Notes under the pieces: generated by a model
What the model saw: the letters and a program-made list of their open reading frames with translations, nothing else
Told to the model about the DNA's origin: nothing
Database searches by the model: none
Source of the DNA: Macrostomum lignano
Taxonomy: Eukaryota
Direction: 5' to 3'
NCBI GenBank assembly: GCA_002269645.1
Contig: NIVC01000061.1
Span: 620,001-684,000, forward strand
DNA length: 64,000 bases
Position numbers and translations under genes: made by a program
Shown: in pieces, positions 5,360-60,737 of the stretch
Numbering within the stretch: the stretch's first letter is position 1
How the letters are laid out: every line of letters starts with the position of its first letter

Positions 5360-5395
<36 letters not shown>

Positions 5396-9980: not shown

Positions 9981-10335
9981 AAACCATGCTCATTACAGGC
10001 ACACTTTGTATAATCGACCTAAATGTAGTTGATTAAGACTTTCCCAAATAAGTGCATGATATTTACTAAATCTTATAGTTTGAACTTGGAATTCTCAAGG
10101 CATTTGCTGCAGAGCTCTAGAAACTTATCTATGCACTGATTAAGGTGGTACATGACCGCCTATATCTTATCAATCTAGTGCAATAAAAGCAGAAAAGATA
10201 TGCAGACAATTCACAGTTGATACCGAGAAAGTTTAAAACGGTAGGTGCAAACTCGAGGTCAGAAAAAGCGATTCGAAAGCAAAATATTTTTCTGCACAGA
10301 TTTGTTTTTCAGTAGCAAAACAGGCCCGCGGCGGG

Positions 10336-13300: not shown

Positions 13301-13747
13301 CAGCTTGCACCTTGATCATAATTCTTAATCACAGGCTAAAGACTCAGCCGGAAAGCTTTCTAACCGCGGCATCGACTCACGACAATGTCGGAGTGCAAAC
13401 TTTCGTGCCCGGCTTTGGAATCGTCGACACTGTGCTGTGGCTCTCTAACTGGCAGACAAAGTACAGTGAGTACTTCGTGGATTATGAGCACTGGCGTTAG
13501 TTTATTTGATTAGATATTTCATTGACACATTCACCAAACTATCAACTTAGTATTTTATTGATACCATAAAAATTTATTATTGTAATATGCATGTAGTATT
13601 CAGAACGATTCTTAACAGCTTCTTAAAATTTTCCTTCCAGCCGCCTACTACTCAAGCATTGTTGCTCACCTAGAGGAGAAGCTCAACTACACAAAAAATA
13701 TCGACATCAAAGCCGCCCCGTACGACTTCCGGAAGGCGCCAGGTTGG

Positions 13748-13805
<58 letters not shown>

Positions 13806-13808
13806 CAA

Positions 13809-13893
<85 letters not shown>

Positions 13894-13937
13894 CAAAGAC
13901 AGACAGACAGACACAAAGACAGACAGACAAACAGACC

Positions 13938-13969
<32 letters not shown>

Positions 13970-13985
13970 GGCAGGCGGGCGGGCA

Positions 13986-14083
<98 letters not shown>

Positions 14084-15565: not shown

Positions 15566-15677
15566 CTGCCCACTGGGCTCATCCACACTTCCCACAACTT
15601 CTTATAACTTATACGTAGAAGCGCTCGTATACAACTTTAAAGTGATTAATCTGACGGGTTTCAGCCTTCTTTAGAAA

Positions 15678-16264
<587 letters not shown>

Positions 16265-16754
16265 CGAGCGCAACCCTGCCCCCCATCTGACCTGCTAACC
16301 CAGCACGCAAGCCTACCCGTTAATTCATAGGAGCACCAAAGCACCAACATACGCGATTTAGTTTTTAAAAATTGAATCTACAGAGTGGGGGGGGGGTAAA
16401 AATCTTTTACGGTGTAATTTTTCCATCTTACTAAAGAAAAGTTTATGGCAAAAAGAAGGTTTTCATTTGGACTGTTTCGCTCATAAATCTTTGTTCGCTA
16501 TCGAAAAAATCACATATCAAAACGTTTCGCGCTGTCGAAAGGTTTTCGTAAAGTAGAATGCATCTATATAAAATCCATGAAATTTAAAACCCTCTACATG
16601 AAAGTCAACTTTTCTGCAGAAATTTCGCACCGAGTTCAACGTGGTCGCTGTGTAAAAATTAATTGCGGCATTTTAAAATCTTCAAAATAGGGGAGTTTTT
16701 GACGATGCAAAACTTCCAAATTGCGTATGCGAGGCGTCTGATTTGAACTCAGAC

Positions 16755-17198: not shown

Positions 17199-18952
17199 GT
17201 GGATACCTTGAAATGAAATTTGGCAGAGATTCAAACTGAGATATTGACTTACCAAAAATGAATAAATTTATTTTAAGTAGCTCGTATTTGTTCTGTCTAT
17301 GGTAATTTAATATTTTTGAAAACGTTCTTCAAGTGACTAGCCCAAGGAATTCTACTCTTAAATCTGGAATTCCTTGGCTAGCTAGATTAAGCGATGATTG
17401 TTTCAAAAACGAAAAAAACTGGGCAATCACGAATGGAGGAATCTAGCACGCTGACGAGTGCGTCAATGACTGAAACACGAGTGCGTAGCGCACGAGGGTT
17501 TTTACCATAGACGCACAAGTCAAAGTGCCTGATTCCCATTCTTATTTGATCCAACATGTGTGGCTAAAGTAGACTAGGGTGGAGCTGGGGTGTGGAGTTA
17601 GACTTGAACCATAGACAAAATATGCGCGAGCTAGTCTGGACATTCTTGCACGATGGAAAGAAGATTATGCTTGTAGTCTATGGCTGTTATGCTAGCTCGT
17701 AAATATAGAAACATCGCGCATTACATTCTTGCACGATTGACATTCCTCCTGCACGGAGTGCACATGTAAATTCAAGGTGCTTTTACCATAGACACTTGCA
17801 TTTCTGCACGCATTTGGCGACTTCCAAAGCATTCTTGCACGCTGGATCAAATAAGAATATGCACTCTTAGGAAAGTGTTTAGTTATTTACTGGAATTTAT
17901 TGACTTTTGCTCCATCAATGTTTCAGCTTGCATTCTTGCTTCATAATTCTTTTCAACGCCTTGCACAAAAGTGCGGCTATGGAGGGATCCTCTTAGGAAC
18001 CCTAATTGTAACTCTATGGAAAACCATAGCAGAATTCAGTGCTGGGTTTGCGCCGGCCTTTCTGAAAGCGTCTGCTGCAGGGCGAGATTCGTTGTTGGAA
18101 CTGGCCCTTAATGCCAGGCATTCATACCTTACTGCTTTAGGCTCTGCATACGCGTGGCTCGAACTTTGCTTCCACTTTCGTGCGCTCTGCCCCCCTGGAC
18201 TGCCCCGTCTGCGCAGCCTCTGACGCATCGCAGCCCTGTCTGTCTGTTCCAAGCAGATGCGACACGACGAATTTCTTTTGCCGATTCCCACACCAACCTC
18301 TGCCATGTGATGTACACCAGGTAGAATTAGTTCATTATTGCGTACGCCGCCCGAATACATGCTGCAGAAGTTTTGTCACTTCTGGGGAGGGATCGGGATG
18401 GACGACGTTCTTAGGTGGATAGGAAAATGCCATCATTCCAGCCGTATTTTACCTTGGCCTTCTGCAGCCCAGTGGATCGGGGCTGCTTCAGCTGCAGTAA
18501 AAATGCGCAATCGATTCGAAGGGGCCGAGTGCGGCCCAGTGCGACCTCTCTTCCCTCTCTCCCTCTCTGTTCTTCCCACCTCCTCATGCAGCCTCTCTCT
18601 GGCATTCGCTTGCTGCAGATGAAAACTTGCTTTTGTCTCCCAGAATTCTGCGTGGATCCTTGAAAGAGTGGGCGGGTGGCGTTCGAATGGGGTAGCGGAT
18701 GGGATCAGGGACGGCAGCGAGGGTCAGGGCGGGGTACGTGGGATCAGCTCCTAGTTAAATGTCGCTGCGCCCGCTGCAAAATTGCCCTCCTCCTTCCTGC
18801 TCGCCGCCGGCCCTATTCCTCCTTCATTCTACTGCAGAGCCTTCATCTTTTCTGCGGTCAACTTGCAACCCACTTCGCTAGGCTTTTCGCTGCTATCGTC
18901 GGTTTTCTTTTCTGTCGCTAAGTTTCTGTGCTGTTGTCAACCAAAATTTAGC

Positions 18953-21900
18953 ATGGACGCCATCAAGAAGAAGATGCTGGTGATGAAGCACGAGCGTGAG
19001 AGTGCTGGAGAAAAGTAAGTTTGCATGATGAACCAGAAAATTGCACTTGAGTTTGATATTTGAATGATATTTAAATTATAATGAGGAATTTGCTTTCATC
19101 ACTGATTGCTTTCATGGGTTTTCAAATAAATTTTGAGTATGATTGCGATGCTGAACGAATACCAGCTCAGAATTCGACACAATTCGAATTCAAATTTGCA
19201 AGCATCGTTTAAGATGTCGATAAAGCCCCACTCACCAATGGATTCAACTCAAAAATTTTAGAGCTACCCAGCTGGAAGAAAAGCTAAAGGAAAAGGAAGC
19301 TGAAATGAACAAGAAGGAAGAAGAGATGGGCGAGTTTCAGAATAAATTAAAGCAATTGCAAATTAATGTTGACGAAGCGCAGGATACATTAGCTGCAGCT
19401 ACCACCAATTTGGACGAGACCGAAAAGCGAGCTAGCAACGTAAGTTTCCTATTTTATGTATTTTAGTGCAGCTGAAATCCTGCAAAAAATATCTAATAAA
19501 TGTATCTATTTGTTTATTTCGAAAGGAGGCATTTAAATTTTGATAAAATATGCGTTTCATAGAAACCATCGAATTTGCGAATAAGCTAACGACTTAATAG
19601 TAAATTTATATAACCTTTACACTTGTCTTAGTGCCTTTGTTTGAGCTCATTTACACTGGATTTAAATAACTTTTTCCTAAGAACTAGGCCTATTTAGAAA
19701 TTTTAATACAGTGTTAACTGATTTGATTATGTCTTCGAATAAGGACCAGGGTCAAGGCCAGAACATTTTGGCAACACTTAAAAACAAGATGACAAGTTTG
19801 AGAAATGAGCTCGATAAAGTTACAGAGGAGCTTTTTAAAAAAGAGGCTGCATTGAAGGAAGAAGTTCATTTGCGAGCACAGGTATGCTTTTACTTAGTCA
19901 AAGCTTCAGAATATTAATTATGAAGATAAGAAATCTAACTAAATAATTATAGAAGTAAACCTTAATAAGCCATAATAAGCCAATAGCCATACATTTGCAA
20001 ATGCAACCTTTGAAATTACATCAGCCATGCAGCTTGGTTTTGACTTAAAATGTAACTTGGCCCAACTTATCCAGAATTAAGTTATAAAAATCTTTAATTT
20101 GTTTGTTTTCTAATTTTGTCAAAAGTCAAATGGTGGCTTATGTTGCTAGGCCTAAGTGGATGCACACAAATTCGGCAACAGAGTTAACACAGACAAATTT
20201 GGTAAAAGCAAATTCTGCAATTGGCAACAATTTAGGCAAATTTGGCCACAAGTCATTTTTAAGTCTGATTTATTGACTGCGACCAAGGCTTCAGATATAA
20301 GCCATCTGCTGTCTGACCAGACCAACTCCACCCCCTTTGTTAATAGTACAACACATGGCTTTAACTTAAGGACATATGACTACAAGGTATACATAGTTAG
20401 CTAAGTGTACTGTAAAAAAATATATATCAGAATAGAAATATTATCAATTGATATAATTACTGTACATGTATACTGTTTATGTTTATAAATTTAGATTTCT
20501 GTGGCAAGTGCCTTAAGACTCTAGCCACTAAACTCTTGTATGTATGACCTTTGATAGAAAATATTGTATCAAAGGCATTGTGCATCTTTTTAAGAATAGG
20601 GTCTAAACTAACATTTTTTGGTAAGCATATTTAAATTAAATTTTGGGATAAATAATCGATAAACCAAACTCAATTTAAAAAGAAAGCTAATATGCATGAT
20701 CTATCCCATTTTAAAAAGGTCATTTATTATTCAATACCAGCATATTTTTTAACAAATTGCATGCACTAATTTTTTTGGTGTGCATTTGTAATTATTCAAT
20801 TTTTGTCCAGGCGTGCACCTAGCATGATCCAGACTATAGGTTAGCACCGAGTTACATTATTATTCTGGTCTACCAAAATTTAAGGGCCATTTTTTTTAAG
20901 AATTATCAAATTGATAGGCTTTATTACCTAGGGGTTGGACGTGATCACGATTTTGTGAATTCACAACCATATTTTCATGATCGTGATTTCCTTGAAACCC
21001 GTTCACAACAGTCGTGAATTTCCACTTTATTACATTTTTATTAGAAGTATAACTTTTCTTCTTGGTTTACCAAAATATATGAACACAAATGTGTAAAAGA
21101 GTAATAAATTTTACATTTGTTGACTTGACAGCATTACCGAGTAGCTATTATCAATTTATAAATATTTGTTTTCTTGTTTTGTTATTTTCAACACTTGTAA
21201 CTACGAGCTCAAATACGTGTATGCAAATATAAATTCACAATCACGATCATGCCCAACTTTGAAAATTTCATGAAATTTCACGCCCGACCAAAATTTTCTG
21301 CTCGTCCGACCTCTATTATTAACTATAGTTGAATATGAGTCCTAATCTTAGGATCATTTACATATTAATATCAATTCTATTTGATAGAAACTCAACTTGA
21401 TTAAAGTATCAGCAATTGAACTAACTTTTGCATTGTTAAGTTGCAAGAAATTATTTATGAGTTAGAGTTGAGTCCTGGCCTTTCCTAACCTTTTCCATTG
21501 AGTTGAACAGCCTTAGCAGCGTTATGGAAGTGACACAATTCAAGCAATAGTTTTATCTATTAATCCACTATGTAATTTTACCACCTCAGGCCGAGGCTGA
21601 GGTGCAGGCTCTGACCAGGCGAATCCGACTGCTAGAGGAGGACCTGGAGCAGACCGAGAGCAGGCGGCAGGAGGTCACATCAAAGCTTGAGCAGGCCAGC
21701 AAACTGGCTGATGAGAGCGAGCGGTGAGAGCTTGGCCATTGCTTTTGAGCTCTGAATGCTATAGTTTGGCACGATAGGGCAGATAGAGTTGCTCACAGCA
21801 GTAGCTTTGGCGCCCCTCCCTATCAGCAGCTTTGGCGCCCCCTCCCTATCAGCAGCTTTGGCGCCCCCTCCCTATCAGCAGCTTTGGCGCCCCTCCCTAT

Positions 21901-24900
21901 CAGCAGCTTTGGCGCCCCTCCCTATCAGCAGCTTTGGCGCCCCTCCCTATCAGCAGCTTTGGCCTTGGCGCCCCCCCCCCACAGCAGCTTTGGCGCCCCC
22001 TCCCTATCAGCAGCTTTGGCGCCCCTCCCTATCAGCAGCTTTGGCGCCCCTCCCTATCAGCAGCTTTGGCCTTGGCGCCCCCCCCACAGCAGCTTTGGCG
22101 CCCCCTCCCTATCAGCAGCTTTGGCCTTGGCGCCCCCCCTCCACAGCAGCTTTGGCGCCCCCTCTCTATCAGCAGCTTTGGCCTTGGCGCCCCCCCTCCA
22201 CAGCAGCTTTGGCGCCCCCTCTCTATCAGCGGCTTTGGCCTTGGCGCCCCCCCACAGCAACTTTGGCGCCCCTAGTAACTGTAAGGACAAGTTTTTGCTT
22301 TGCAATTTTATCTGCCTGTGCTGATCCATATGGAGCCTGGCAAAGAGTTGGCAGACAAACTGGTTAAAGATTGAAAAGAAGATTTAGGAAACACTACTTT
22401 GTATGCAACGTTTAGCATTTTCTAATTATAGTAAAATTAATAACAACACCTAGTCCTACTAGTTTTAGTCGAACCTGTTTACCTCTTATTTCGTGAATAA
22501 TCTTGTTTTTCATTGCATCTCGTTATGAATTTAACTTTTTAGATTTTGTATAGGAGTCGAAGTTGCTTTCGTTTACAAAAATATAGTGCCTTGTGCACTT
22601 TAGTGCCTTTTGCATGCGCGCATGCTTCTCCCCGAAGCATTTTGAACCCCTATTGAACAATGTGGGCAAAAATTGAGCCCAACATGAGTAAATTTTAGCA
22701 TTTTGCCACCATCATTGTCGTCAAGGTCTCGCAAGGTGATGGAGACCAATCTCAGCAAGGTGGAGGTAGAAGCGGCCGAGCACGAGCAGCGGTACCGGGA
22801 CTCAATGCAGGCCGCCGCCGAGGCCGAACGGAAATTTGAGGAGGTAGCGGCCGCCAATTGTTTGTTCGATAATTTTCCACCCCGACTCGAGGTTTTCAGT
22901 AGGCGTTCTTTTAAGGCTAATTTTACTTTTTTCGCTGTCTTGGGGTCGTTTGATTTAAGCGTTGCTGATTTTTTTCTCATTTTGTCCAAGTGACGCTTGA
23001 ATGACTGCGAGTCGCATTGAACTGAAAAAATTGGCTGACTGACTGATTCAAATCAAACTGACTGTTCAGCGCCCGCAAGCTGCTGGAGACCGCCTCTTTC
23101 GCTACCGATGAGCGGCTCAGCTCGCTCGAAGAGCAGCTGAAAGAGGCCAAGTTCATCGCCGAGGATGCCGACAGAAAGTACGACGAGGCCGCCCGCAGGC
23201 TGGCCATCTCCGAGGTTGACCTTGGTCGGGTCGACTCTCGGCTGGAGACTGCCGAAAGGTTTTTTAGACAGGAAATTGCGATGAGACTGAATTGGATTGA
23301 AGAAGGCTGTGCGACTTTGTCTCATGGCATTGATTACCTGCATGATTTTGCTGTGTTGGCATGCTAGAAATTTGGCTGTTATTGATTCAGTGAGGTTGGG
23401 CTTGTAGGGGTTGTAAAATTGAGGGGTGGCTGTTCAATGGGGAGCGAGGTGGGGGCTGAGGAGGGGTAGGAAAATTAAGATATGGTTGTTAAGTTTGGAG
23501 TGAGGTGGGGGCTGGGGAGGGGTAGGAAAATTGAGGGTCGCTGTCCAGTTCGGAGTGAGGTGAGGCTGGGGAGGGGTAGGAAAATTGAGGGTCGCTGTTC
23601 AGTTTGGAGTGAGGTGGGGGCTGGGGAGGGGTAGGAAAATTTAGGGTTGCTGTTCAGTGTGGAGTGAGGTGGGGGCTGGAGAGGGGTAGGAAAATTGGTG
23701 GTCGCTGTCCAGTTCGGAGTGAGGTGGGGCTGGGGAGGGGTAGGAAAATTGATGGTCGCTGTCCAGTTCGGAGTGAGGTGGGGCTGGGGAGGGGTAGGAA
23801 AATTTAGGGTTGCTGTTCAGTGTGGAGTGAGGTGGGGGCTGGAGAGGGGTAGGTTTCATTGCTAAATTTAGATAACGAAGGTTTTAGATCAATTGTGACA
23901 CGCAGTAGACAGGTCTAGTTGGATCTTAAATCGCCTATGCTAAATGCTTTATTTAAAGGATGTTTTCGGTCTAATAGCGTGGTCGCCAATCAAGCAGTAA
24001 CTTGAACGTACGGAAATAGAATTTCGCTAGAATTTCTCATGTATTAACATCAGCCAGAGCCTGCGTGCCAGTGAAAGTTTGGGTTCTGGTCCAAGATGCG
24101 GGCCAGTGAAGGGGGCGGGCGGGGTGTCAGCGTGTGCGCTGCGCAGTTTCCCGCCTTGCTGGCAACACAGTCGGGCCTTCTGGTCTGGCGCGACTGCTAT
24201 TGATACTAACTTGTGCGTCTGCATTTTCTCCGTTGTGTTTTGGTATGCGGCTTGCGTTGTAGTTGTGTGCAGCGCGAATGCTAATGCTGTGTATATTTGG
24301 TGTGTATCTCTTGGCACTCTGCGCTTAAAGTTGGTGAAGTCAACTGGAGACTAGTTATTGTTGATCTAGCAAGTCCAATTTAAATGGGTTTTGTAGTTAA
24401 TTTTGGCCACTTCTGGTTGCTAGATTTCTAAAGTTGACTTAAGAAGTCTGGCTTAGATAACAAAAGTACTGTCGATGACCACTAGTTGTTAGATACAAAT
24501 GTTTTGAAGGCTCAATTTTGTTCAGTAATGCATTCGCGAGATAAAATTTTCATATTAGTAGAAAATATTAGTAGAAAAAAAATTAGTAGAAAATATTCAT
24601 AAACTGAATATTCCATTAATTTGTCTGAATATTTTGACCTAATAACCTATTGACTCTATGAACTTGTGACCCAATTACTCCGTGACCTTATGACCAAATG
24701 ATTCCATGAAATTTTAATCCAATGGCTCCATGAGTTTATGACCCAATGACCCCGTGTCCTTATGACCCAATGACCCCCGTGTCCTTATGACCTTTTGACT
24801 CCATGAACTTATGACCCAACCCAATGACTCCTTGTCCTTATGAGTATGACCTACTGACTCAGTGACCTTATGACCTTATGACTGACTCCATGATCTTATG

Positions 24901-27900
24901 ACCCGTGACCTTATGACCCAATTACCGGTATTCCATGACCTTATCACTTTATTGTATTATGACCTAATGACTCTATGACCTTGTGACCCTAATGAACCTA
25001 CGATCTTAAAGTCCCTTTGACCGTATGACCTTATCACTGCACGACCTCAAGCTACCTGCTCTATCGCGGCAGGGTTAATTAGAACCCAGCTTATTAACTC
25101 AGTGGCTGCCTTTGATTGCGAGTAACGCAAGCCTTCTCAGCTGCGAACTAACCGCGGCTAAGGCTGCTTAACTTACGTTATTGACCAACAATTGTGCTGC
25201 ACAGACTCCGCTTGTTCGCAAGCCATCGAGTCTCGCGCTGCTGTGTAGCAAAACTGAGCCTTCAATGAAATTTACTCTAATTAGCACATTGACTCCCTGA
25301 GTAACGAAATGCTCGAACCACATCCGGTTCCGGCGTCAGGTGAGCCGTAAGCAGCGCATGACGGAGTCCGAGCTCGAGCGCGCCGAATCCCGCGCCGAGG
25401 CTAGCGAGCGGCGCGCCAAGGAGCTGCAGGAGGAGCTGCAGCGCCTTGGCCACAGCCTCCGATCGCTGGAGGCCAGCGAGGCCCAGGTGAACAGAAATAT
25501 GGATATGATCTAATTCTAGACGGTCTACTACTATGAGTAGCGTTGATCTTATCTAGTTCTACTATTACGAGCGTATACTCGTATAGTTTAGGAAGCATTT
25601 ATTATAATCTTAGGTGAAAAAAATCGACGCAACCCTATGGACGCACTGTCAAAACTTATTGATGAGTATGATTGGTTCTTATTTGTTTACTAAAATTTAC
25701 TCACCTGTCAGCATGCGCGCGTTTTCTTTTTCGCTTGTCCCCGGCACTTTGCATTTTCTGGGATTTGTGCCCTTTTTTGCTGTTCTCGCTTCTCTTTGGT
25801 GTATTTTTTTTATTGCTGTTGCTTACATGTGCGTGTTAGCATTGCGTGAAATCATTTCACCCTATCACCTTATGATCTCAGGGCCTTATGACCCATGAAC
25901 CTATGACCCTATGAACCTATGACCCTATAGCCTTTTGACCCTATTATATTATGACCCCGTAACCTTATGAGCCTATACCCTATGACCTTATGAACCCATG
26001 CCCATGATTATTTGACCATATGACCCCACTTTCTTGTGACCACATGACCTATGATTTTGAATTTATGACCTACGTCGCCCTTCAACCTGGGGCTACCCTT
26101 ATGATTCACTTGAACCTTGTGGTCTAAGTTACTCCTATGATCTACGTAACCCATTGACCTTCATTGACCTTCTCGAGGTCCCGCTTACCCACCTGCCCAG
26201 TCCCGTCGCATCCATGCATAATAACCCGTCAGCCAGCAACGCTAAAAGCAGCAAACCGACAACTGTAGCAAAATTCTGGAGCTGGAGGAGGAGCTGCGCG
26301 TTGTCGGCAGCAACATGAAGTCGCTCGAGGTCTCCGAGCAGGAGGCGGCCCAGCGCGAGGAGTCCTACGAGGAGACCATCCGGGAGCTCACAGACCGGCT
26401 CAAGGCTGTAAGCGGCCGGGCCGTCGGGCCTGTGGCTTATGCAGTTCATTGTGTACTTTTAGTGTGGCAGTGGCGGATCCAGGAGCTGCTGGCTCTCCAA
26501 CTCCTATGGGCAATGTTGCACTAGAGAAATTTTACTCTATAAAAGTAGTTTTAAAGTCCAGTAGAAAGAATACCTAAAAGGCCTTACAAAACCTGAAGCA
26601 TCTAAAGAGTTAACCGAAAGGACCTAAAGTGTACAAACCTTGGACTTGAAGCGTAGCGTACAGACCTGAAGGGTAGACCTGAAGCGTACAAACCTGAAGG
26701 GTAAACCTGAAGGACCTGTAGCGTACAGACCTGAAGGGTAAACCTGAAGCGTACAGACCTGAAATGTAAACCTAAAGGACCTGAAGCGTACAGACCTGAA
26801 GGATAAACCTGAAGGACCTGTAGCATACAGACCTGAAGGTTATACCTGAAGGAACTTATAGATACATCTAAAGGACCTGCAGGGTAAACCTTATTGAAAT
26901 AACTTATTGACCCGAATGGCAAACATGGTCTGAGAGCTAAGCCTGATGAACCAATGGTCTTGGAATTTTCAAAAAAAATTTCCTATCAGCTGATCTGAAT
27001 CCGTCACTGCCAATTAGTCGTACAGAAACTGAACTTTTCATATTACAATATCAATGGCTATTGAGTTTCTACTGCTGAAATTTGATTCATTCCTGCTGTC
27101 TATTCAATCAAGACAATTTCTGTTCACTCTGCTGTCAGCTCATCTTGCATCGAGTTTTTTCCTGTCGCTTCTTTTGCCTGCGTAAATTTCCCGAGCTTGC
27201 TTGCAACCCGCATGCTGACAGGTTGGTGTGAAATTTTTTATTAAAAATACGAAAGCAGATTTTGTTAGTGCCAGTCTGCGCCAGTCCGGTTGCTGAGAAT
27301 CTCCGCTTGAGCACGTGCCTCCTCTGCAACCCGCATCGTTCGTTTGTTTCTTGCAGTCAGTTGACAGAGAGGAGTCCTACGAAATCCAGATGAGAAACCT
27401 CACGGACAGGCTGAAACAGGTAAAATAACTGCATTTATCACTTTTTCTCTTACAAGATCTACGATATAATTTATGAATTGTAGCAACATGTATTGTTTCA
27501 GCGTAGCTAATGACTGCGAATTTGCCTGCGCATGCCTGTTTACTTTGTTTTGGCGTACATGTAGCTTGACCTTTGACCTCGCTTGGCTTGACCCTAGGCC
27601 TACACAGTGCATGACCCTGGTTTGAACTCTTGATCCCTGACCTGACTTTTGACCTTTGACTTCACCCAGCTTGACCTTTTATTGACCTTTGACCTCACCC
27701 AGCTTGACCTTTTATTGACCTTTGACCTCAACTAGCTTGACCTTCAATTGATCTTTAACCTTAACCAATTTGACCTTTTATTGAACTCTTGACCTTGACC
27801 TAGCTTGACAGCATCTTTCTATCTACGTGTTTCTATCTTTCTTCGTTCCCTTGCCATCATATCGTTCTGTATTCTGTTCTCTTACTGGCCTGACGCTAGA

Positions 27901-30900
27901 TTCTGTCTGTCTCTGACCTATCTTGTGCCCCCCCTTGACCCCGGTGACCCAGGCGGAGCAGAGGGCCCAGGAGGCGGAGCGCCAGGTGTCGAAGCTGCAG
28001 AGCGAAGTGGACCGTCTCGAGGGTACGCGGTTGAGCCTGACTGAGCCTGTGTGCCTGAAATCAATGTTTTATTGTCTGTGTAGTACTTTGACTATGATTT
28101 ATGATGCTCACAGAATCCCAGTCGTCTGTCTATATTTTCAGTATTACAGTAGTTTGTATATTTAATATTCGCCGTCGGTGACGCAGCGTATCCAGGATGT
28201 TTTGCTTGCTGGTTTGCCGTGCTGTCCTCAATTCATGCGAATTTGTTTATTTTTTGGCTCTGCCAGGCCACCGAGAGAGCTGAAAATGTTGAACGGGAGG
28301 CGGCCAAACGCCAGAAAGAATTGGAGAAGGTGGAAGGTAAAATGCAGTAGAAACGCAGTAGTTACTACTCATTAGTAATATTCAATGTTGTGTTGTAGCC
28401 ACGGCACTTTTAATTCCTTTAATAACCAACACTATTGCCGATTTAGTTAATCAACACAATTTATAATGATTCTTTCGATCTAAATTAGCTGCAATAATTA
28501 CCTGCTTAATCTTAATCATCATTAATGCCTATCAATCGAAGTGATGATTTTAATGGCTTATTATTTCAAGTGCGTATTTCGTATGGAGCAAGCGGAACGA
28601 GAGTTGCTCGTGATGAGGCGCGAAAGAGACTTGGCGGAAGGTTGCTAAATTATATATATATAGTAGTTTGCTTTAGTGTCGGTGTCAGTTTTAGATTTTA
28701 GTATTCATTTTTGTCTGCCATGAGAAACCGGTGATCCTAAGCACTTTTAATTTGCCATCGGCTAAAACTATTATTTTTTAACACTGCTCTGTGGTTTGCA
28801 TGTTGGCGGTAAAAATTTTCTGTTACTAACTTGCATTTTTATATGGCTTCCGGTTTTTCATTGTACCCCAGTTCCAGGCGGCGGTATGGGGTTCCCTACG
28901 TTATATGGTTTTTGGGCTCTAAGCGTCCTTTATGGGTTGTGGGCTACCTACGAATTTTATGCTTTATGGTGCAACCCACACCTTTCAGTTTCTGGGGGGT
29001 TGCGATTTTTGTGAGTGCTCGGGGCATTCTGGGGCTCCCTACGTCATGTGGTTTTTGGGCTCTGTACGTCCCTTGCGGGTTTTGGGGCTAGCTACGTATA
29101 TTATGGCCTATGGGGCTACCACAACCCTAATAGTTTCTGGGGCTCTCTACGTCCCTTTTAGGTTCTGGACTCAGGTATCTTATGGGATCCAGTTTGTGGC
29201 TCCCTTATTCCATTGTGAGTTCTGGTCTGCGTTTTTAACGCACTATGTGCAGTTCTGAAGGATTCCCACCGTGCTGACCCTAATTTGATTTTTAGGGCTC
29301 TTTATTACCACTCAGCCGATTCGATGTCAATTATGGGGCTCTCTACGGCCATGCGATTCGGGGCTTCCTAACACCCGCTTGGTTTTATTGTAGCAGTTTG
29401 GTGGCTCCCCACCACACTGTTCGAATTTCTGGGTGTCAAATAAGAATGAAAAGGCCGGACAGCTTGAGACGCATGCTTGAATAATTTTGACGTGACTTGG
29501 CCCCAAACTAAAACATTCGCTCTCCTTGCCTGCGCCCCCGCTTGCAGAGAAGTTGATCGAGGAGAAGCAGCGCACCTCGGCTCTCAAGCAAGAGATGGAC
29601 GCCATGCTGACAGAATTTCAGCAGCTCTGAAGCTCCTGAAAAATATCCTGTCGCTGAAGCTGATAGAGATTCTCAATTACCCATCTGAGCACGGACTTTT
29701 GACGTTTGTTTTGCTCTCCCATAGTTTTGTGGCAATATAATAATTCCCTGCAGCTACTGAAAGTAGCCATTTGTGCAAATTTCCAGCCTGTAAGGCATTC
29801 TAGGAAAGGAGCTTTTTCAATAACACGTTGCTTATCGTGTATGAGTAGCCTTTAACAGTAGTATGCGGTGTCGGTCTGCTGCCTTGGTCTGTTTTTGCTA
29901 TTCCCGAAATTGCTGACATTGGTACGGCATGCATTGCGCGAACTCCAGCTGAACTCCCGTCTAATAACCCAGTGCTGAATCACTGCGGCCTTGTGCATTG
30001 CATTGCTAGCAAACTAATTTTTCAATTTGTTCAAATTCACCTATAATTTCTATTGGTATTAATCATGTATGCCTGTTTTTTCGTTTCGTATCAATTCATT
30101 TTTATTTAGTCACTAAGCAACACTAATTACGATTAGAATTTTTAAAAACAAATTAGCAGTTTTTATAGTTCTGTTTTTTAATTCAATATTCTGCCAAAAT
30201 GTTAAAAAGGTTATTATCTGTCGTTGGTTTAAATGCTAGGGTTTAGCAGAAGTTTTTAAATGTGCTATGTCACATCTGGACTTAAGGTCTGGTGGAAAGG
30301 AGCCTGGCTTAAGAATTATACACTCCTAAACAGTCCAGTTTCAACCCCTCCCCTCAATGTACACCCTCCCGACCAACCCAGTTTCAACTTCAACCCATCT
30401 AAATGTACACTCTCTCTCGACCAGCCCAGTTTTAACTTCACCCCCCTCAATGTACACTCTCTCCCGACCAGCCCAGTTTCAACTTCAACCCATCTAAATG
30501 TACACTCTCTCGACTAGCCCAGTTTCAACCTCCAATCTACACTCACTCCTGACCAGTTCAGTTTCAACCCCACCCCCAATGTACAGTCACTCTCGACCAG
30601 CCCAGTTTTTCGACCCCCCTCCCCCTCAAATGTACACTATATCTTTGAAACTGTTTTACTAAGCTCCGAACCTATTTAACAGATCAATGTGTTTCAGTCT
30701 TTTGTGATCAGTAAATCTGATTGATTTCTCCCAGTTTGCTAGTAGCTCCAGCTGCTTGAACTAGTTGATGATTTAAGAGACAGAGGTTTCTAAAGCTTAT
30801 TTTGATGTTTTTGATTGCTAGTATTACGCAAATCGCTCTGCCAGCTGTACCTATATTAACCCAACAATAGTATTCACATTTATTATTTACTCGCATGTAC

Positions 30901-32383
30901 TCCCCAACTTTTATTTACTTCTCCGTTCCGCACTTGACATGAGTAGCCAAGCTCAGTCTGAGGTATTTTTTATTGCCCAACCAAAGTAGTTTTTTTCAAC
31001 AAACGAAGTTCATTCATTGGAATAGACCTTTTCCTACTCACCTGGCCTACCTAGCTTTCGTATCGATTGTGTTTGCTCTACGTTTTTTACGAGCTCTAGG
31101 CATAAGTTGTATAATTAATATGGACTTTAGATAACACTATTAATAATAAAGCATGAAGCTTAGTCGCTCGCTTTGACCTTCACGCGTTAGCAAAGCAAAT
31201 GCTTGAGACTGAGTAATAAATGATGAGCATGTGCTGCATCTCCTGCATGGCTCTGATGTGTTTTGCTAAATGCATTAAGAATTCCTGGAACCAGTTGGAC
31301 TAGCTGTGTCACCGAGGGTAACAAAGGTTATTCCCGTTATAAATGTAATAAATTTGCTTGCAACGAAATCCCGAAATGTTGTCCCCCACAAGGACTTAAG
31401 TACGAGAGGAAACCTCGTTTCTTCGAAAAAATTTGAGGCTGGTTCTACCCGAGAAATTCTAAGAAGATCTAGAATTCTATGAATTCTAAGAAAGGAGGTT
31501 TCCTGTCCTACCTAAGTCCTGGACTGAAGCTCAGTCTCTGGAAATATTTGGAAATTAAATTGAAATCAAAGCATTCAACACCAACATATTGATCGGTTTC
31601 TTTGAGAATACAAGTAAATGTAGTTGGAATAAAGAAGTTTGATCAAAAAGCCTAAAAATTGTCATATTTCAAAAATCCACCGTAATTGTGAGGAAGTCTA
31701 TGAACTTGTTAAAACCACAGATACTAGAATAACTCGTAGATGGGCTGGGCCACTCAGCACATTTGCGTGTAAGCTACTTTCAGTTCAGTAGTATGTTAAA
31801 CAGAAGCATTTTAATGTATTCTAAACCCAAGGCTCATTTTTAATTATCGACTCTTACCCCAGCCTAAATCCTCCAACCGCGCCTTTCCAAGTGTTTCCAC
31901 ACCAATTAGTTGTTTATTCCTGCAAGCTTGGGCTTCTAAGCTTATCAAAGTCATTATTTATTATAAAATAACGTGTATATATTTCTTCTTTGCTACTGAA
32001 CTGAAAGTTGAAAGCTGTTTTACTAAGTATATATGCCCGAGTGGCCCAGTTACTTTAGAATCTGTGGTTAAAATTGGCTCAGATGAACATGTACTACTCA
32101 TAGTACCTGTTAGACCAACTTTATACATCACACTCGATATACATGTATTCGTACATATATGTATGCACCTACTGATAGTTACACAACTTTAAATTTATAG
32201 ACGTGGACGCCTTTTTAGTTGTGTTAAAGTACATGTATTAGTATTCGTGTACGATTAATTGTACAAGTCACTGAATGATCTCAAACAAACAACTCTGCAG
32301 ACGATCTGCTCTCGGAGAAGGAGCGCTACAAGGGCATCAGCGACGAGCTCGACACCACCTTCGCCGAGCTCACCGGCTATTAG
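18953..32383 (+). CDS. TPM: Tropomyosin, long muscle-type isoform (284 aa)
   Basis: join(18953-19014, 19262-19439, 21590-21723, 23070-23258, 26269-26407, 27953-28022, 32301-32383) = 855 nt. MDAIKKKM start, [39 protein letters not shown] end. Confidence 0.95.
19729..29630 (+). CDS. TPM: Tropomyosin, short non-muscle-type isoform (about 255 aa) using the divergent exon track
   Basis: join(19729-19881, 21590-21723, 22726-22843, 25340-25486, 27357-27419, 28267-28336, 29548-29630) = 768 nt in frame; exon sizes match canonical tropomyosin exon modules (134, 118, 71+76, 63, 70, 83). The exact combination is inferred, not observed. Confidence 0.8.
20929..21315. mobile_element. hAT-like MITE (387 bp) in tropomyosin intron
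   Basis: TIR TAGGGGTTGGACGTG / rc TAGAGGTCGGACGAG (12/15); flanking 8-bp TSD TTATTACC / TTATTAAC (7/8); subterminal inverted CACGAT/ATCGTG motifs. Confidence 0.65.
21808..22273. repeat. About 24-26-bp minisatellite in tropomyosin intron 3
   Basis: CAGCTTTGGCGCCCCTCCCTATCAG. Confidence 0.9.
23440..23855. repeat. G-rich about 55-60-bp repeat
   Basis: GGAGTGAGGTGGGGCTGGGGAGGGGTAGGAAAATT. Confidence 0.9.
24645..25030. repeat. Degenerate ATGACC-rich low-complexity tract
   Basis: TATGACCC/TGACCTTA motifs; similar tracts at about 25865-26165 and 27560-27810. Confidence 0.75.
26620..26885. repeat. Degenerate ACCTGAAG repeat
   Basis: AGCGTACAGACCTGAAGGGTAAACCTGA. Confidence 0.8.
28571..28640 (+). 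CDS. Putative third tropomyosin exon-8 variant
   Basis: ttcaag|70 nt|gttgct, phase 0 to phase 1 like the other exon-8 copies. [23 protein letters not shown] aligns with [23 protein letters not shown]. Confidence 0.5.
28850..29370. repeat. Highly degenerate TGGGGCT(C/A)CCTAC repeat
   Basis: Recurrent TTCTGGGGCTCCCTAC-like words. Confidence 0.65.
30330..30635. repeat. Degenerate repeat CCAGTTTCAAC..AATGTACACTCTC
   Basis: About 6 diverged copies. Confidence 0.75.
31391..31520. mobile_element. Small MITE-like hairpin element (130 bp)
   Basis: 33-bp inverted termini AGGACTTAAGTACGAGAGGAAACCTCGTTTCTT vs rc AGGACTTAGGTAGGACAGGAAACCTCCTTTCTT; no clear TSD. Confidence 0.5.
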
Positions 32384-33437: not shown

Positions 33438-34957
33438 ATACACCATTTTACCCTCGATCCCGAACAAGGAGAACTTCGAAACTGACAAACTCCTCTTCAA
33501 TATTGACACTCTATGGTCGGGCACTCAAAATCCACAATCAATATTGACAGATCAAGCTTCAATTTTGACAAACTCTGGTTCAATTTTGACAATGCACGTT
33601 TAGTCAACTTCTCCTGGGAGAATTCGGTAACAAAGTAATCCAATGAAAGCCTGAACGGGGCTGAAGTGAGCTGTGCAAAATCAGCTTATTCTGACTTTGC
33701 TTTTTGGATCTACAAGTATTGATAAAATTTATTTTTCTCCATCCTTTAGACACACAGACTAAAATAGCCTGACTGGTTGGGGTGCAAAGTCTGATTCTAT
33801 TTTGACAGAGTTGCTTCAAAACTGACACTCTATGGTTTGTGTACCCAAAAAGTCCGCTTCATTTTTGACAACTCCGAATCAATATTGAACAGTTAACAAT
33901 CGATTTTGACTAAGACATTTTTTGAAATAGATTTTAACAATTTTTACTAAGATTTCTCTCTTGAGGGGGGTACTTGCTATTTGGGAGAAGGGGTACTGGC
34001 TGCATGTATCCACGAGTACATGTATGGGAACATTTTTATCCAGGGATGCTTGCTATCTGGGTGGATGTTTGCTACCTGGATGATGCTTGCTATCTGGGTG
34101 GATGTTTGCTATCTGGGTGGATGCTTGCTATCTGGATGGATGTTTGCTATCTGGGTGGATGCTTGCTATCTGGGTGGATGCTTGCTATCTGGGTGGATGT
34201 TTGCTATCTGGGTGGATGCTTGCTATCTGGGTGGATGCTTGCTATCTGGGTGGATGCTTGCTATCTGGGTGGATGCTTGCTGTCTTGGGATGTTAAATGA
34301 CCGGCCTTTTGCTAGAGTCCCTTGAGAGAGCAGGGACTCTAGCAAGCATCCCTGGATAGAAACACTCCCATACATGTACTCGTAGATACATGCAGCCAGT
34401 ACCCCTTCTCCCAAATAGCAAGCACCCCCCTCAAGAGAGAAATCCTAGTAAAAATTGTTAAAATCCATTTCAAAAAATGTCTTAGTCAAAATCGATTGTT
34501 AACTGTTCAATATTGATTCGGAGTTGTCAAAAATGAAGCGGACTTTTTGGGTACACAAACCATAGAGTGTCAGTTTTGAAGCAACTCTGTCAAAATAGAA
34601 TCAGACTTTGCACCCCAACCAGTCAGGCTATTTTAGTCTGTGTGTCTAAAGGATGGAGAAAAATAAATTTTATCAATACTTGTAGATCCAAAAAGCAAAG
34701 TCAGAATAAGCTGATTTTGCACAGCTCACTTCAGCCCCGTTCAGGCTTTCATTGGATTACTTTGTTACCGAATTCTCCCAGGAGAAGTTGACTAAACGTG
34801 CATTGTCAAAATTGAACCAGAGTTTGTCAAAATTGAAGCTTGATCTGTCAATATTGATTGTAGATTTTGAGTGCCCGACCATAGAGTGTCAATATTGAAG
34901 AGGAGTTTGTCAGTTTCGAAGTTCTCCCCGCTCAAAATCGAGGGTAAAATGGTGTAT
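33438..34957. mobile_element. Foldback / non-autonomous DNA transposon with 618-bp inverted arms
   Basis: Arms 33438-34055 and 34340-34957 are near-perfect reverse complements (ORFs 33604-33828 minus and 34567-34791 plus are identical). Termini TA-CACC...GGTG-TA; internal A(T/A)TTTGAC/ATTGAC subrepeats; no transposase. Confidence 0.8.
34056..34275. repeat. 19-bp minisatellite in foldback spacer
   Basis: TCTGGGTGGATGCTTGCTA. Confidence 0.9.
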
Positions 34958-35492: not shown

Positions 35493-38400
35493 TTATCGCA
35501 CAGGCGGAGGCCGCGTGGCAAACTGCAGCAGGCTGTTGGGCGTCGGCCTGGGCGGTCCGTAGCACAAATCCACGCCCTCGTTGCCGCAGAAGATGTTGAA
35601 CATGATGCCGGCCGTCATTAGCAGGACGTAGAGCACCAGGAAGATCCAGAACATCACTCTCTCCCATTGCTTCACGTCTATGTTGCGGAGTAGCGGGACT
35701 CCGATTAATAGGCCTGTTGGAAAGGCGGGGGAAGAGATCTCATTCAAAGTCTTTGTGCAACACGATAACTGATACTGAGTTGTAGTCGTTTAAATACAAA
35801 TACAAACTGAATTTGAATGGTCTTTGTTGATCTTTGTTGGCCACAACCAGTACAGGTAGCTAATAGCTGACAAAGACTAACCGGCCCCAACCAGTACAGG
35901 TAGCTAATAGCTGACAAAGACTAACCGGCCACAACCAGTACAGGTAGCTAATATCTGACAAAGACTAACCGGCCACAACCAGTACAGGTAGGTAGCTAAT
36001 AGCCAACAAAGACTAACCGGCTACAACCAGTACAGGTAGCTAATATCTGACAAAGACTAACCGGCCACAACCAGTACAGGTAGGTAGCTAATAGCCAACA
36101 AAGACTAACCGGCCACAACCAGTACAGGTAGCTAATAGCCAACAAAGACTAACCGGCCACAACCAGTACAGGTAGCTAATAGCTGACAAAGACTAACCGG
36201 CCACAAAGCCGCCACCATGAGCGGCAAAGCTGGTCTGCGAGCGGGTGTCAATGAAGAAGCGGTTGTACACGGCCAGGCCGGTGTCGCCCCCGGCTAGCAG
36301 CAGCAGCACGATCAGGCGGAACACGCCGCTGCCGAAGAAACTGACGGGATTCTTCAGCCAGTCGTGCTGCATCTCCTCCCAGTTCAGCAGCACGTTGGCA
36401 AAATGCGCGCCAATCAAAGCGTAGCAGCCGCCCGAGGCGCCAACCAGAGCGATGCGCGGATCGAAGCAGGAGCTGGCGAGCGAACCCGCGACCACACCGA
36501 GCAGGTACACGGGGCCGACGCGCCAGAGTTTGTGCACCAGCTCTAGCAGGACACCGAGGATGAGCTGCACCAGGCAGTTGAAGATCAGGTGGATGTAGCT
36601 GCAAGGGTTAAGGAAGATGTTCAGGGCGATTTAGAGGATGGGGTTTAGGGTGATTCAGAGGATGGGTTTAGGGCGATTCTGAGGATGGGGTTCAGGGCGA
36701 TTAAAAGGACGGGGTTCAGGGCGATTCAGAGGATGGGGTTTAGGGCGATTCAGAGGATGGGGTTTAGGGCGATTCAGAGGATGGGGTTCAGGGTGATTCA
36801 GAGGATGGGTTTAGGGCGATTCTGAGGATGGGGTTCAGGGCGATTCAAAGGACGGGGTTCAGGGCGATTCAGAGGATGGGGTTTAGGGCGATTCAGAGGA
36901 TGGGGTTTAGGGCGATTCAGAGGATGGGGTTTAGGGCGATTCAGAGGATGGGGTTCAGGGCGATTCTGAGGATGGGGTTCAGGGCGATTCAGATTCAGAG
37001 GATGGGGTTCAGGGCGATTCAGAGGATGGGGTTCAGGGCGATTCAGAGGATGGGGTTCAGGGCGATTTAGAGGATGGGGTTCAGGGCGATTCAGAGGATG
37101 GGGCTCAGGGCGATTCTGAGGATGGGGTTCAGGGCGATTCAGAGGATGGGGTTCAGGGCGATTCTGAGGATGGGGTTCAGGGAGAGTCAGAGGACGGGGT
37201 TCAGGGCGATTCAGAGGATGGGGTTCAGGGCGATTCAGAGGATGGGGTTCAGGGCGATTCAGATGATGGGTTTCAGGGCGATTCAGAAAATTATTAGGGT
37301 TCAGGGGCGATTCAGAGGATGGGGTTCAGGGCGATTCAGAGGATGGGGTTCAGGGCGATTCAGAGGATGGGGTTCAGGGCGATTCAGATGATGGGTTTCA
37401 GGGCGATTCAGAAAATTATTAGGGTTCAGGGCGATTCAGAGGATGGGGCTCAGGGCGATTCTGAGGATGGGGTTCAGGGCGATTCAGATGATGGGGTTCA
37501 GGGCGATTCTGAGGATGGTGTTCAGGGAGAGTCAGAGGACGGGGTTCAGGGCGATTCAGAGGATGGGGTTCAGGGCGATTCAGAGGATGGGGTTCAGGGC
37601 GATTCAGAAAATTATTAGGGTTCAGGGGCGATTCAGAGGATGGGGTTCAGGGCGATTCAGAGGATGGGGTTCAGGGCGATTCAGAGGATGGGGTTTAGGG
37701 CGACTCTGAGGATGGGGTTCAGGGCGATTCAGAGGATGGGGTTCAGGGGCGATTCAGATGATGGGGTTCAGGGCGATTCAGATGATGGGTTTCAGGGCGA
37801 TTCAGAAAATTATTAGGGTTCAGGGGCGATTCAGAGGATGGGGTTCAGGGCGATTCAGATGATGGGGTTCAGGGCGATTCAGATGATGGGTTTCAGGGCG
37901 ATTCAGATGATGGGTTTCAGGGCGATTCAGAAAATTATTAGGGTTCAGGGGCGATTCAGATGATGGGGTTCAGGGCGATTCAGATGATGGGTTTCAGGGC
38001 GATTCAGATGATGGGTTTCAGGGCGATTCAGAAAATTATTAGGGTTCAGGGGCGATTCAGATGATGGGGTTCAGGGCGATTCAGATGATGGGTTTCAGGG
38101 CGATTCAGATGATGGGTTTCAGGGCGATTCAGAAAATTATTAGGGTTCAGGGGCGATTCAGATGATGGGGTTCAGGGCGATTCAGATGATGGGTTTCAGG
38201 GCGATTCAGAAAATTATTAGGGTTCAGGGGCGATTCAGAGGATGGGGTTCAGGGCGATTCCGGGAATTTAATCTGGACTCCGGGTGATAAGGGGTGATAT
38301 TAAGCAGACGTTTCCTTGGCTACTCCAAGGATGGCGATTCTGCGCTGTACAAATATATAAACAAATCAAACTAGATTTCTGCACGCTTGTAGCATTTGTT

Positions 38401-60511: not shown

Positions 60512-60737
60512 CTGTCGAAAAGATGGGAAGGAAAAACTTCTCTAAAAAGAGACTTGGAGAAAAGGTAAAAAAATGTATGCCGGAGCCAGGTGAGAGGAAT
60601 CAGGAACTGAACGGAGACGAAGGCTTTTGGCGAACAATGGGGGATTCTAACTGAGTCTGCTGGGAATGAAAAGTTACGTATGAATAAGTAAATTTTGGAG
60701 AAAAATATACAGAAAAGTGAAAATGAGATAGAGATGG

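Follow-up and report, generated by a model that had tools for sequence, protein, structure and literature searches.

A tropomyosin gene of Macrostomum lignano with two interleaved exon tracks and staggered, fused exons

The window analyzed here, a stretch of 64,000 nucleotides of Macrostomum lignano contig NIVC01000061.1, contains a tropomyosin gene on the forward strand, with two alternative exon tracks, A and B. The high-molecular-weight (HMW, muscle-type) isoform starts at exon 1a (18953..19014, 62 nt), which was located by tblastn with human TPM1 and has the donor GTAAGT, and continues into exon 2 (19262..19439, 178 nt; AG/GT), whose frame runs on from 1a and into exon 3 and which is identical in a second copy of the gene; exons 1a and 2 together comprise 240 nt and encode canonical residues 1-80. 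An alternative first exon of the low-molecular-weight (LMW) type, 1b (19729..19881), provides 153 nt of coding sequence (MSSNKDQ...HLRAQ) as an open reading frame that begins with ATG and stops at a phase-0 GT donor; it joins exon 3 in frame and resembles the LMW N-termini of parasitic flatworms in type. Exon 3 (21590..21723, 134 nt) is the sole coding exon common to all isoforms and corresponds to "common exon E" of S. mansoni TpmII (PMC4026961).

Two sets of exons lie downstream of exon 3. Set B consists of a fused exon 4B5B (23070..23258, 189 nt), a fused exon 6B7B (26269..26407, 139 nt), 8B and 9B; set A consists of 4A (22726..22843, 118 nt; 1/118 nt mismatched in the second copy), a fused exon 5A6A (25340..25486, 147 nt; 0/147 mismatches), 7A (27357..27419, 63 nt), 8A and 9A. 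Exons 4A and 7A have canonical lengths, and those of the fused exons are sums of canonical ones (189 = 118 + 71, 147 = 71 + 76 and 139 = 76 + 63), which places the ghost junctions between 23187 and 23188 (4B/5B), between 25410 and 25411 (5A/6A) and between 26344 and 26345 (6B/7B). For exons 3, 4A, 4B5B, 5A6A, 6B7B and 7A, the coordinates and lengths given in a first-pass annotation of this DNA proved exact, with AG/GT borders and an open tropomyosin frame.

Three exons of 70 nt and 23 residues follow: the canonical-type 8B (27953..28022), of which 20-21 of the 23 residues match parasite 8B; 8A (28267..28336), which has AG/GT borders and the length and phase of an exon 8 and which the transcript-derived GenBank models P0199 and P0209 join to 9A; and a tentative third exon 8, the candidate 8c (28571..28640), with the same borders, length and phase, a retained heptad register (0.86 hydrophobic at a/d) and 0/70 mismatches with the second copy (p = 0.077). 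Both terminal exons encode 27 residues; 9A (29548..29630) is recognizable as an ortholog of trematode 9A (tblastn, E = 3e-5) and its stop coincides with the end of an annotated 75-aa model, and the annotated CDS ranges for 340-aa and 284-aa products end at the stop of the canonical-type 9B (32301..32383). The first-pass annotation had placed the duplication at exons 4-7 and taken exon 8 onward as shared; exons 4-7 are indeed present twice, but the duplication continues through exons 8 and 9. Because 8B/8A, the candidate 8c and 9A/9B are thus also duplicated, and an alternative first exon 1b is present, the tracks span exon 4 to the stop codon and are probably paired with two promoters.

In the long form, both tracks yield 284 aa with an unbroken heptad coiled coil. 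Against the PF00261 profile (cutoff 38.6 bits), the HMW-B isoform scores 269.6 bits, the LMW-A isoform 173.2 and the A-only segment 4A-9A 112.1. Over residues 126-284 in the canonical register, the hydrophobic fraction at positions a/d is 0.74 for A and 0.83 for B, and ≤ 0.49 in other registers; for track A alone, the comparison is 74% versus ≤ 47%. Identity between the tracks is 39% over exons 4-8. The second M. lignano copy (L007) preserves all exons, splice sites and fusions; mismatches between the two copies amount to 5/634 (0.8%) in A exons, 3/659 (0.5%) in B exons and 511/11360 (4.5%) in introns, and gap columns to 2085 in introns and 0 in exons. Given the profile matches, the heptad register of track A and a second copy with every exon, splice site and fusion intact, the tropomyosin structure is not due to chance. 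The 8A/9A junction, which transcript-derived GenBank models show for both copies, is the sole RNA-supported link in M. lignano, and a full-length A isoform was not found among the protein collections searched.

The exon phases agree with those first assigned: phase 0 at the ends of 4A and 5A6A, and 2 extra bases at the end of 4B5B. When all 32 ordered subsets of the five exons covering exons 4-7 were enumerated, only 4A+5A6A+7A and 4B5B+6B7B gave 328 nt and the 284-aa product, so that the in-frame full-length choices for residues 126-234 fall from 16 to 2. All four cross-track joins that had been predicted to shift the frame do so: 4A-4B5B leads to a stop at codon 178 and 4B5B-5A6A to a stop at codon 189, and 4A-6B7B and 5A6A-6B7B are likewise out of frame. 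Wrong combinations in exons 4-7 shift the frame, with premature stops upstream of later junctions. The phase lock proposed on this basis is nevertheless not absolute, as six other subsets keep the frame (4A; 6B7B; 4A+5A6A; 4A+7A; 6B7B+7A; 4B5B+6B7B+7A), each at the cost of a deletion or duplication within the coiled coil; with 4B5B+6B7B+7A, for example, the product is 21 aa longer, and with 4A+5A6A but no 7A it is 21 aa shorter. Moreover, the lock is limited to exons 4-7 because the 7-to-8 and 8-to-9 joins stay in frame between tracks. The ghost junctions have no GT donor, and those at 4B/5B and 6B/7B keep an AG; these AGs may serve as cryptic acceptors that yield in-frame cross-track products, although the sequence before them is purine-rich.

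For comparison, the tropomyosin loci of four parasitic flatworms, Paragonimus, S. japonicum, E. granulosus and Hymenolepis, were mapped. The order 4A 4B, 5B 5A, 6A 6B, 7B 7A, 8B 8A, 9A 9B is common to the M. lignano window and the first three parasites, and Hymenolepis matches for 4A and exons 5-8, its 4B not being recovered by the scan and its exon 9 not recovered or checked; with these exceptions, both copies of exons 4-9 follow a single exon 3 at all five loci. The parasite genes, which also have an alternative LMW first exon, differ from that of M. lignano in their introns: they retain the canonical introns 4/5, 5/6 and 6/7 in both tracks (Hymenolepis 4B was not recovered), with separate 4B (118 nt) and 5B (71), 5A (71) and 6A (76), and 6B (76) and 7B (63), and no fused-length exon was found in the four loci scanned. 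Any A/B mixture is therefore in frame in the parasites, whereas M. lignano, without introns 4B/5B, 5A/6A and 6B/7B, has staggered boundaries and frame-shifting cross-track joins in exons 4-7. Vertebrate TPM exons also measure 118, 71, 76, 63 and 70 nt. Because the parasites keep these introns in both tracks and the exon lengths equal those of vertebrate TPM, we take the fused state to be derived, and the change would have been one of intron loss, in line with the complementary intron loss proposed at first; since the parasite loci combine the same order with all canonical introns, exactly three introns would have been lost, each between adjoining same-track exons.

Deposited parasite cDNAs are either all-A or all-B, which implies that a mature mRNA holds one member of each exon pair. 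Proteins derived from cDNA that combine 1b with an all-A sequence are available from S. japonicum (clone ZZZ89, P0121), E. granulosus (LMW isoform, P0123), M. corti (Tpm1 LMW isoform, P0124) and Schistocephalus (P0126). In S. mansoni TpmII.7, B exons follow an LMW start, which indicates that the coupling between promoter and track is not strict. In S. mansoni TpmII, common exon E is followed by the pairs F/G, H/I, J/K, L/M, N/O and P/Q, which undergo mutually exclusive splicing (Silas et al. 2014, PMC4026961), and tandem-duplicated exon pairs in the tpm genes of E. granulosus and M. corti are attributed to Alvite & Esteves 2009 and Koziol et al. 2011 in PMC4015340. Cestode HMW isoforms are muscle-specific (PMC4015340).

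We consider it probable that M. lignano inherited two complete exon sets from an ancestral flatworm arrangement and then lost three same-set introns, and that the track is picked by splicing, with the reading frame as a fail-safe. The ancestor would have had the order shared with the parasites and every canonical intron, an order that already places the same-set exons 4B-5B, 5A-6A, 6B-7B and 8A-9A side by side. Three of the four introns between these neighbors (4B/5B, 5A/6A and 6B/7B) would then have been lost precisely in the M. lignano lineage; no other kind of intron in the region could disappear without merging an A with a B exon, and from the three losses the staggered boundaries and the frame-incompatible cross-set joins would follow automatically. 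In parasitic flatworms, set A supplies the short cytoskeletal isoform starting at 1b and set B is the conserved muscle-type sequence, and by analogy A would be the short isoform and B the muscle isoform in M. lignano. Splicing regulation, probably linked to promoter or tissue, would choose the track in three or four skipping steps. Whereas the first-pass annotation proposed that one choice at exon 4 commits the middle third of the coiled coil, the reading frame would act as an error filter only: mis-joined RNAs are predicted to carry premature stops and would be removed by nonsense-mediated decay (NMD).

Rather than being neutral losses at the sole permissible sites, the same intron losses could have been selected, as an adaptive lock that hard-wires the coupling of isoform-specific exons and blocks chimeric tropomyosins, an explanation we regard as unlikely. 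In its favor, just one of the four losable introns is left, whereas 1a/2, 2/3 and all introns separating A from B exons remain; the surviving same-track intron, 8A/9A, holds the candidate exon 8c, whose position there would explain why this intron was retained; and cross-track products are in frame in the parasites but out of frame in M. lignano. However, there is no sign that chimeric isoforms are harmful or made in the parasites, whose cDNAs are already all-A or all-B although no lock exists there; the number of losable introns, four, is too small to distinguish selection from a generally high rate of intron loss; and the 7-to-8 and 8-to-9 joins were left free. It is just as doubtful that a selected staggered fusion was the hard-wiring step that turns alternative exon sets into true paralogues within one gene. 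If that were true, precise loss of introns at each permissible same-track junction would have abolished chimeric isoforms for the central third of the rod, M. lignano would represent a natural halfway stage from combinatorial alternative splicing to gene duplication, and intron loss could work as an isoform-coupling mechanism.

The A exons 4-8 of M. lignano are 39-44% identical to B exons versus 24-30% to parasite A exons, so the orthology of the A sets rests on 9A and the conserved order and not on sequence trees. A separate origin, by lineage-specific duplications that made the A and B sets, or with fused exons as the ancestral state and intron regain in Neodermata, would render the likeness to parasites convergent. 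Among bilaterians, many independent duplications of tropomyosin exons have occurred (PMC3342872), the M. lignano A exons 4-8 are no closer to parasite A than to B exons, and the annelid Dimorphilus has a different pattern (3a 3b 4a 4b, then exons 5-9 fused). Yet the A/B order is identical in all six pairs (approximately 1 in 32 by chance), 9A is specifically similar to trematode 9A, tandem duplication hardly yields staggered fused exons, and it is implausible that introns were regained at exactly those positions that set the exon lengths of vertebrates; we judge a separate origin highly improbable. Least credible of all is that track A consists of pseudo-exons, a relic in decay or out of use, in a gene that in effect makes the B isoform alone: the strong divergence of A from canonical tropomyosin and the absence of a full-length A isoform from the protein collections searched would fit, but open frames, AG/GT sites and correct heptad register are kept throughout the A exons, the A-only segment matches PF00261, conservation between the copies is 5.7-fold higher in the A exons, which have no indels, than in introns (p = 1.7e-7), 8A-9A is spliced in transcript-derived models, and four parasites have orthologous all-A cDNAs.

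The term MATEs denotes mutually exclusive alternatively spliced tandemly duplicated exon sets. In tropomyosin, duplicated exons "assigned" to long or short isoforms under alternative promoters have been described as internal paralogy (Irimia et al. 2010, Mol Biol Evol 27:1504, as summarized in PMC3342872), that is, two paralogue-like proteins from one gene, as is proposed for M. lignano. The first-pass view of two paralogues sharing one locus fits the all-A and all-B parasite cDNAs, but as a concept it had been published in this form; unlike the M. lignano case, the account in that summary includes neither fusion of same-set exons by intron loss nor the resulting frame incompatibility. A frame shift with NMD as a safeguard against wrong combinations is known for mutually exclusive exons, of which interleaved clusters exist, such as CUX1 (Hatje et al. 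2017, PMC5740500). There, too, wrong combinations give a frame shift and a premature stop codon, but the frame penalizes joint inclusion or joint skipping within one pair, whereas in M. lignano it penalizes switching between two multi-exon tracks because exon boundaries differ between the tracks. Vertebrate TPM1-4 and C. elegans lev-11 likewise use alternative promoters for long and short forms and mutually exclusive homologous exons in mid-gene and at the 3' end (PMC5921574, PMC10512467); their alternatives, unlike those of M. lignano, have identical boundaries and combine fairly freely, without staggered fused exons. Thus, on the question of whether the architecture had been described, the duplicated pairs had been published for S. 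mansoni TpmII (PMC4026961), as had exon sets per isoform and frame-shift safeguards, and the staggered fusion alone appears to be undescribed. The M. lignano arrangement is a neat but modest departure from the known flatworm layout.

The deposited M. lignano models, as far as visible, comprise one full-length product per gene copy and a 75-aa fragment; the annotation of the locus should hold at least the 284-aa muscle-type isoform and a 255-aa all-A short isoform. Because transgenesis and RNAi work in M. lignano and public RNA-seq is abundant, the need for tropomyosin exon coupling and its policing by NMD are directly testable in this model. The locus would offer a clean and datable example of alternative splicing constraining intron loss, the lost introns being flanked by same-isoform exons only, and, conversely, suggests that intron loss is able to rewire alternative splicing, here from 16 in-frame combinations of exons 4-7 to 2.

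The duplication in this tropomyosin gene spans exon 4 through the stop codon, and exon 3 (21590-21723, 134 nt) is the sole coding exon common to the diverged exon set (track A) and the muscle-type set (track B). Exons 4A (22726-22843, 118 nt), 4B5B (23070-23258, 189 nt), 5A6A (25340-25486, 147 nt), 6B7B (26269-26407, 139 nt) and 7A (27357-27419, 63 nt), three of them fused, correspond to the canonical tropomyosin lengths of 118, 118+71, 71+76, 76+63 and 63 nt. When the region was read and exon 3 and each of these exons was translated, the coordinates, lengths, AG/GT splice dinucleotides and phases assigned in the first-pass annotation all proved correct. The rest of the gene model was obtained by tblastn of human TPM1 against the window and by reading the flanks: exons 1a (18953-19014) and 2 (19262-19439), which provide the high-molecular-weight start; the alternative first exon 1b (19729-19881, MSSNKDQ...), which provides the low-molecular-weight start; exon 8B (27953-28022); a second exon 8, 8A (28267-28336); and the terminal exon 9B (32301-32383). 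With the C-terminal exons of parasites as queries, a permissive search recovered a second terminal exon, 9A (29548-29630; E = 3e-5 to its trematode counterpart). The first pass had ended its interval at 28022 and taken exon 8 onward to be common to both tracks, which the second exon 8 and the second terminal exon contradict.

A scan for hidden exons, covering all AG/GT-bounded open frames of canonical length and phase, yielded nothing further except a 70-nt candidate at 28571-28640, termed 8c. This segment, a possible third version of exon 8, keeps the heptad register and has no mismatch (0 of 70 nt) with the second genomic copy of the gene; it is also loosely similar to exon 1a. Neither a second exon 1 nor an alternative exon 9 was accepted for 28573-28630, because the phases are wrong; the length and phase are those of exon 8 instead.

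The five exons between exons 3 and 8 were spliced in silico in each of their 32 ordered subsets, and only 4A+5A6A+7A and 4B5B+6B7B gave a segment of 328 nt and a protein of 284 residues. All four of the joins previously listed as frame-shifting (4A-6B7B, 4B5B-5A6A, 4A-4B5B and 5A6A-6B7B) did shift the frame, with a premature stop at codon 178 in 4A-4B5B and at codon 189 in 4B5B-5A6A. This lock, that is, the frame incompatibility of cross-track joins among exons 4-7, is incomplete: six other subsets (4A; 6B7B; 4A+5A6A; 4A+7A; 6B7B+7A; 4B5B+6B7B+7A) are in frame. Every one of these loses or doubles some coiled coil; 4B5B+6B7B+7A gains 21 residues, and 4A+5A6A without 7A loses 21.

The predicted isoforms score 269.6 and 173.2 bits against PF00261, and the A-only segment scores 112.1 bits (Pfam cutoff, 38.6). 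In the canonical register, the a/d positions of track A are 74% hydrophobic, no other register exceeding 47%, and the coiled coil of the track is thus in register across every junction. Of two deposited contigs, one (L006) is identical to window 18192-39630, and the other (L007) holds a collinear second gene copy on a different contig of the same assembly, GCA_002269645.1, which is the Macrostomum lignano assembly Mlig_3_7 (PMC5730564). Such a copy is expected, because M. lignano is a neopolyploid (PMC10733133). In this second copy, all exons have the same length, are open and are bounded by AG/GT, and the three fusions are all present. Between the copies, 5 of 634 nt are mismatched in the A exons and 3 of 659 in the B exons, both with 0 gap columns, compared with 511 of 11360 nt and 2085 gap columns in the introns (Fisher test against introns, p = 1.7e-7 for A and p = 1.2e-9 for B). 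Judged by this alignment, purifying selection is similar on tracks A and B.

The Mlig_3_7 gene models derive from RNA-seq and a de novo transcriptome alone, their ORFs having been called by TransDecoder (PMC5730564). In an index-free protein scan, two GenBank models of 75 residues each (P0199 and P0209) matched 8A+9A at 98% and 96%; the 75-residue model comprises retained intron sequence, then the 8A-9A join at the predicted junction, and ends at the predicted stop. Because 8A-9A is present in transcript-derived models of both copies, the 3' end of track A has RNA support, which covers that join. Word-indexed and HMMER scans of protein collections yielded the 75-residue 8A-9A fragments but no M. 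lignano tropomyosin of full length, and 20 exact-sequence look-ups that spanned the predicted full-length products (promoter x track x exon 8 x exon 9, with or without a 56-codon upstream extension) gave no match. The annotated full-length products have 284 and 340 residues. The one deposited for the window locus, of 340 residues, consists of the 284 codons with that extension (18785-18952) added ahead of the MDAIKKKM start. It lacks an initiator Met and seems to be an annotation artefact, a 5'-partial ORF that TransDecoder carried through the 5' UTR.

Minisatellites with periods of 24-109 nt are present in nearly all tropomyosin introns (arrays at 21799-22272, 23406-23853, 24651-24819, 25887-25996, 26653-26866, 27649-27809 and 30331-30569), and an ATGACC-rich unit recurs, equally oriented, in the arrays of both introns beside 5A6A; the arrays of the second copy differ chiefly in copy number. 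Just downstream of the tropomyosin 3' end lies a 618-bp inverted duplication (33438-34055 and 34340-34957), possibly a foldback or a structure derived from a transposon. Its arms, about 285 bp apart, are 97.6% identical, and one short ORF fragment recurs in both. The upstream neighbour (4703-5443, plus strand) is an exon with a cyclic-nucleotide phosphodiesterase catalytic motif (HNWSHAF...). The downstream neighbour (about 35493-39630, minus strand) is a rhomboid-family gene, with PF01694 in the deposited model, that carries a long tandem array of ~24-nt periodicity at about 36619-38260 and also adjoins the second tropomyosin copy. Very long, near-perfect, short-period tandem arrays at 9099-10013, 13687-16350, 45263-46845, 52651-53136 and 60394-63841 give rise, on both strands, to spurious ORFs 140-780 codons long and are a trap for ORF-based gene calling in the M. 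lignano genome.

The best protein matches are cestode and trematode tropomyosins, several of which are over-long gene predictions running through the alternative exons. Loci of Paragonimus, S. japonicum, E. granulosus and Hymenolepis were subjected to the same AG/GT exon scan as the window. Three of the four carry exons 4-8 each twice at canonical length, with terminal exons 9A and then 9B, in the order 4A 4B, 5B 5A, 6A 6B, 7B 7A, 8B 8A, 9A 9B; Hymenolepis, compared over exons 4-8, agrees in order for 4A and exons 5-8, its 4B having escaped the scan. A fused-length exon was found in none of the four. Same-track neighbours in this order are 4B-5B, 5A-6A, 6B-7B and 8A-9A, and the M. lignano arrangement is the parasite order minus the introns 4B/5B, 5A/6A and 6B/7B, removed precisely, with protein alignments free of gaps across each of the three fused junctions. 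The 8A/9A intron, the sole same-track intron not lost, houses the candidate 8c. Every intron between an A exon and a B exon is retained, which is expected given that losing one would destroy both isoforms. Since the parasite exon lengths equal those of vertebrate TPM genes (118/71/76/63/70 nt), the introns are, on this comparison, ancestral and the fusions derived; the mapping of related flatworms proposed in the first pass hence upheld its idea of intron loss. Orthology of the A exons could not be decided by sequence, the identity of 24-30% being too low, and exon 9A and exon order were used instead. The only non-flatworm comparison locus, from the annelid Dimorphilus gyrociliatus (L004, 7417-8813), reads 3a 3b 4a 4b, with the canonical copy first and the diverged copy second, followed by exons 5-9 as one exon. 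Its intron loss is independent of that in M. lignano and more extreme, and other exons are doubled.

A protein search for cDNA-derived matches, with an all-A composite of S. japonicum as the query, returned four parasite proteins that combine the 1b start with the A copy of each later exon covered: an S. japonicum mRNA clone and a Schistocephalus transcript, both incomplete at the 3' end, and the E. granulosus 'low molecular weight isoform' and the M. corti 'Tropomyosin 1 low molecular weight isoform', both complete through 9A. The B exons are used by muscle-type 284-residue forms. We favour the explanation that the fusions are the neutral result of intron loss at the sole permissible sites, since in the parasites, which have no lock, the cDNAs are unmixed already. 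The alternative is that fusion was selected as a lock.

The frame is unable to select a track and does no more than render wrong joins unproductive. Three or four exon-skipping steps have to be coordinated for each isoform, so that regulation of splicing across the whole set is required. The acceptor pyrimidine fractions are 0.73, 0.55, 0.73, 0.77 and 0.77 for the A exons (22726, 25340, 27357, 28267 and 29548), and 0.50, 0.32 and 0.50 for the B exons (23070, 26269 and 32301), 8B (0.73) being the exception. In so tiny a sample, these values hint weakly that the two exon sets differ in basal splice-site strength, a contrast compatible with default splicing of A and activation-dependent splicing of B. 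Regarding docking/selector-type RNA structures, six intronic inverted repeats of 17-32 nt were found, none positioned to favour a correct join; as their number is no higher than expected for 8 kb, they were rejected as evidence of competing structures. No former exon boundary inside a fused exon has a GT donor, and the two that keep an AG through codon conservation (4B/5B and 6B/7B), with purine-rich sequence upstream, are unlikely to serve as cryptic acceptors.

Duplicated exon pairs in flatworm tropomyosin have already been published (PMC4026961), and the allotment of duplicated tropomyosin exons to long and short isoforms appears as 'internal paralogy' in the summary of Irimia 2010 given in PMC3342872. 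Also on record are the protection of mutually exclusive exons by frame shift and NMD and, as a separate matter, interleaved exon clusters (PMC5740500). The earlier interpretation is partly supported: it is sound as to frames and intron loss, too narrow in extent, a hypothesis as to what the lock does, and largely anticipated in concept. No account was found in which intron loss joins exons of one set and leaves the two sets with staggered boundaries, and this arrangement appears undescribed when set against a literature in which Irimia 2010, Alvite & Esteves 2009 and Koziol 2011 count via the papers citing them.

Mutually exclusive splicing of the pairs F/G to P/Q, which follow the common exon E, is documented for S. 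mansoni TpmII, whose short clones include TpmII.3, with heavy exon substitution, and TpmII.7, with B-type exons (PMC4026961); cestode high-molecular-weight isoforms are muscle-specific (PMC4015340). By homology, the predicted M. lignano muscle isoform of 284 residues is most likely 1a-2-3-4B5B-6B7B-8B-9B, and the predicted cytoskeletal isoform of 255 residues is most likely 1b-3-4A-5A6A-7A-8A-9A.
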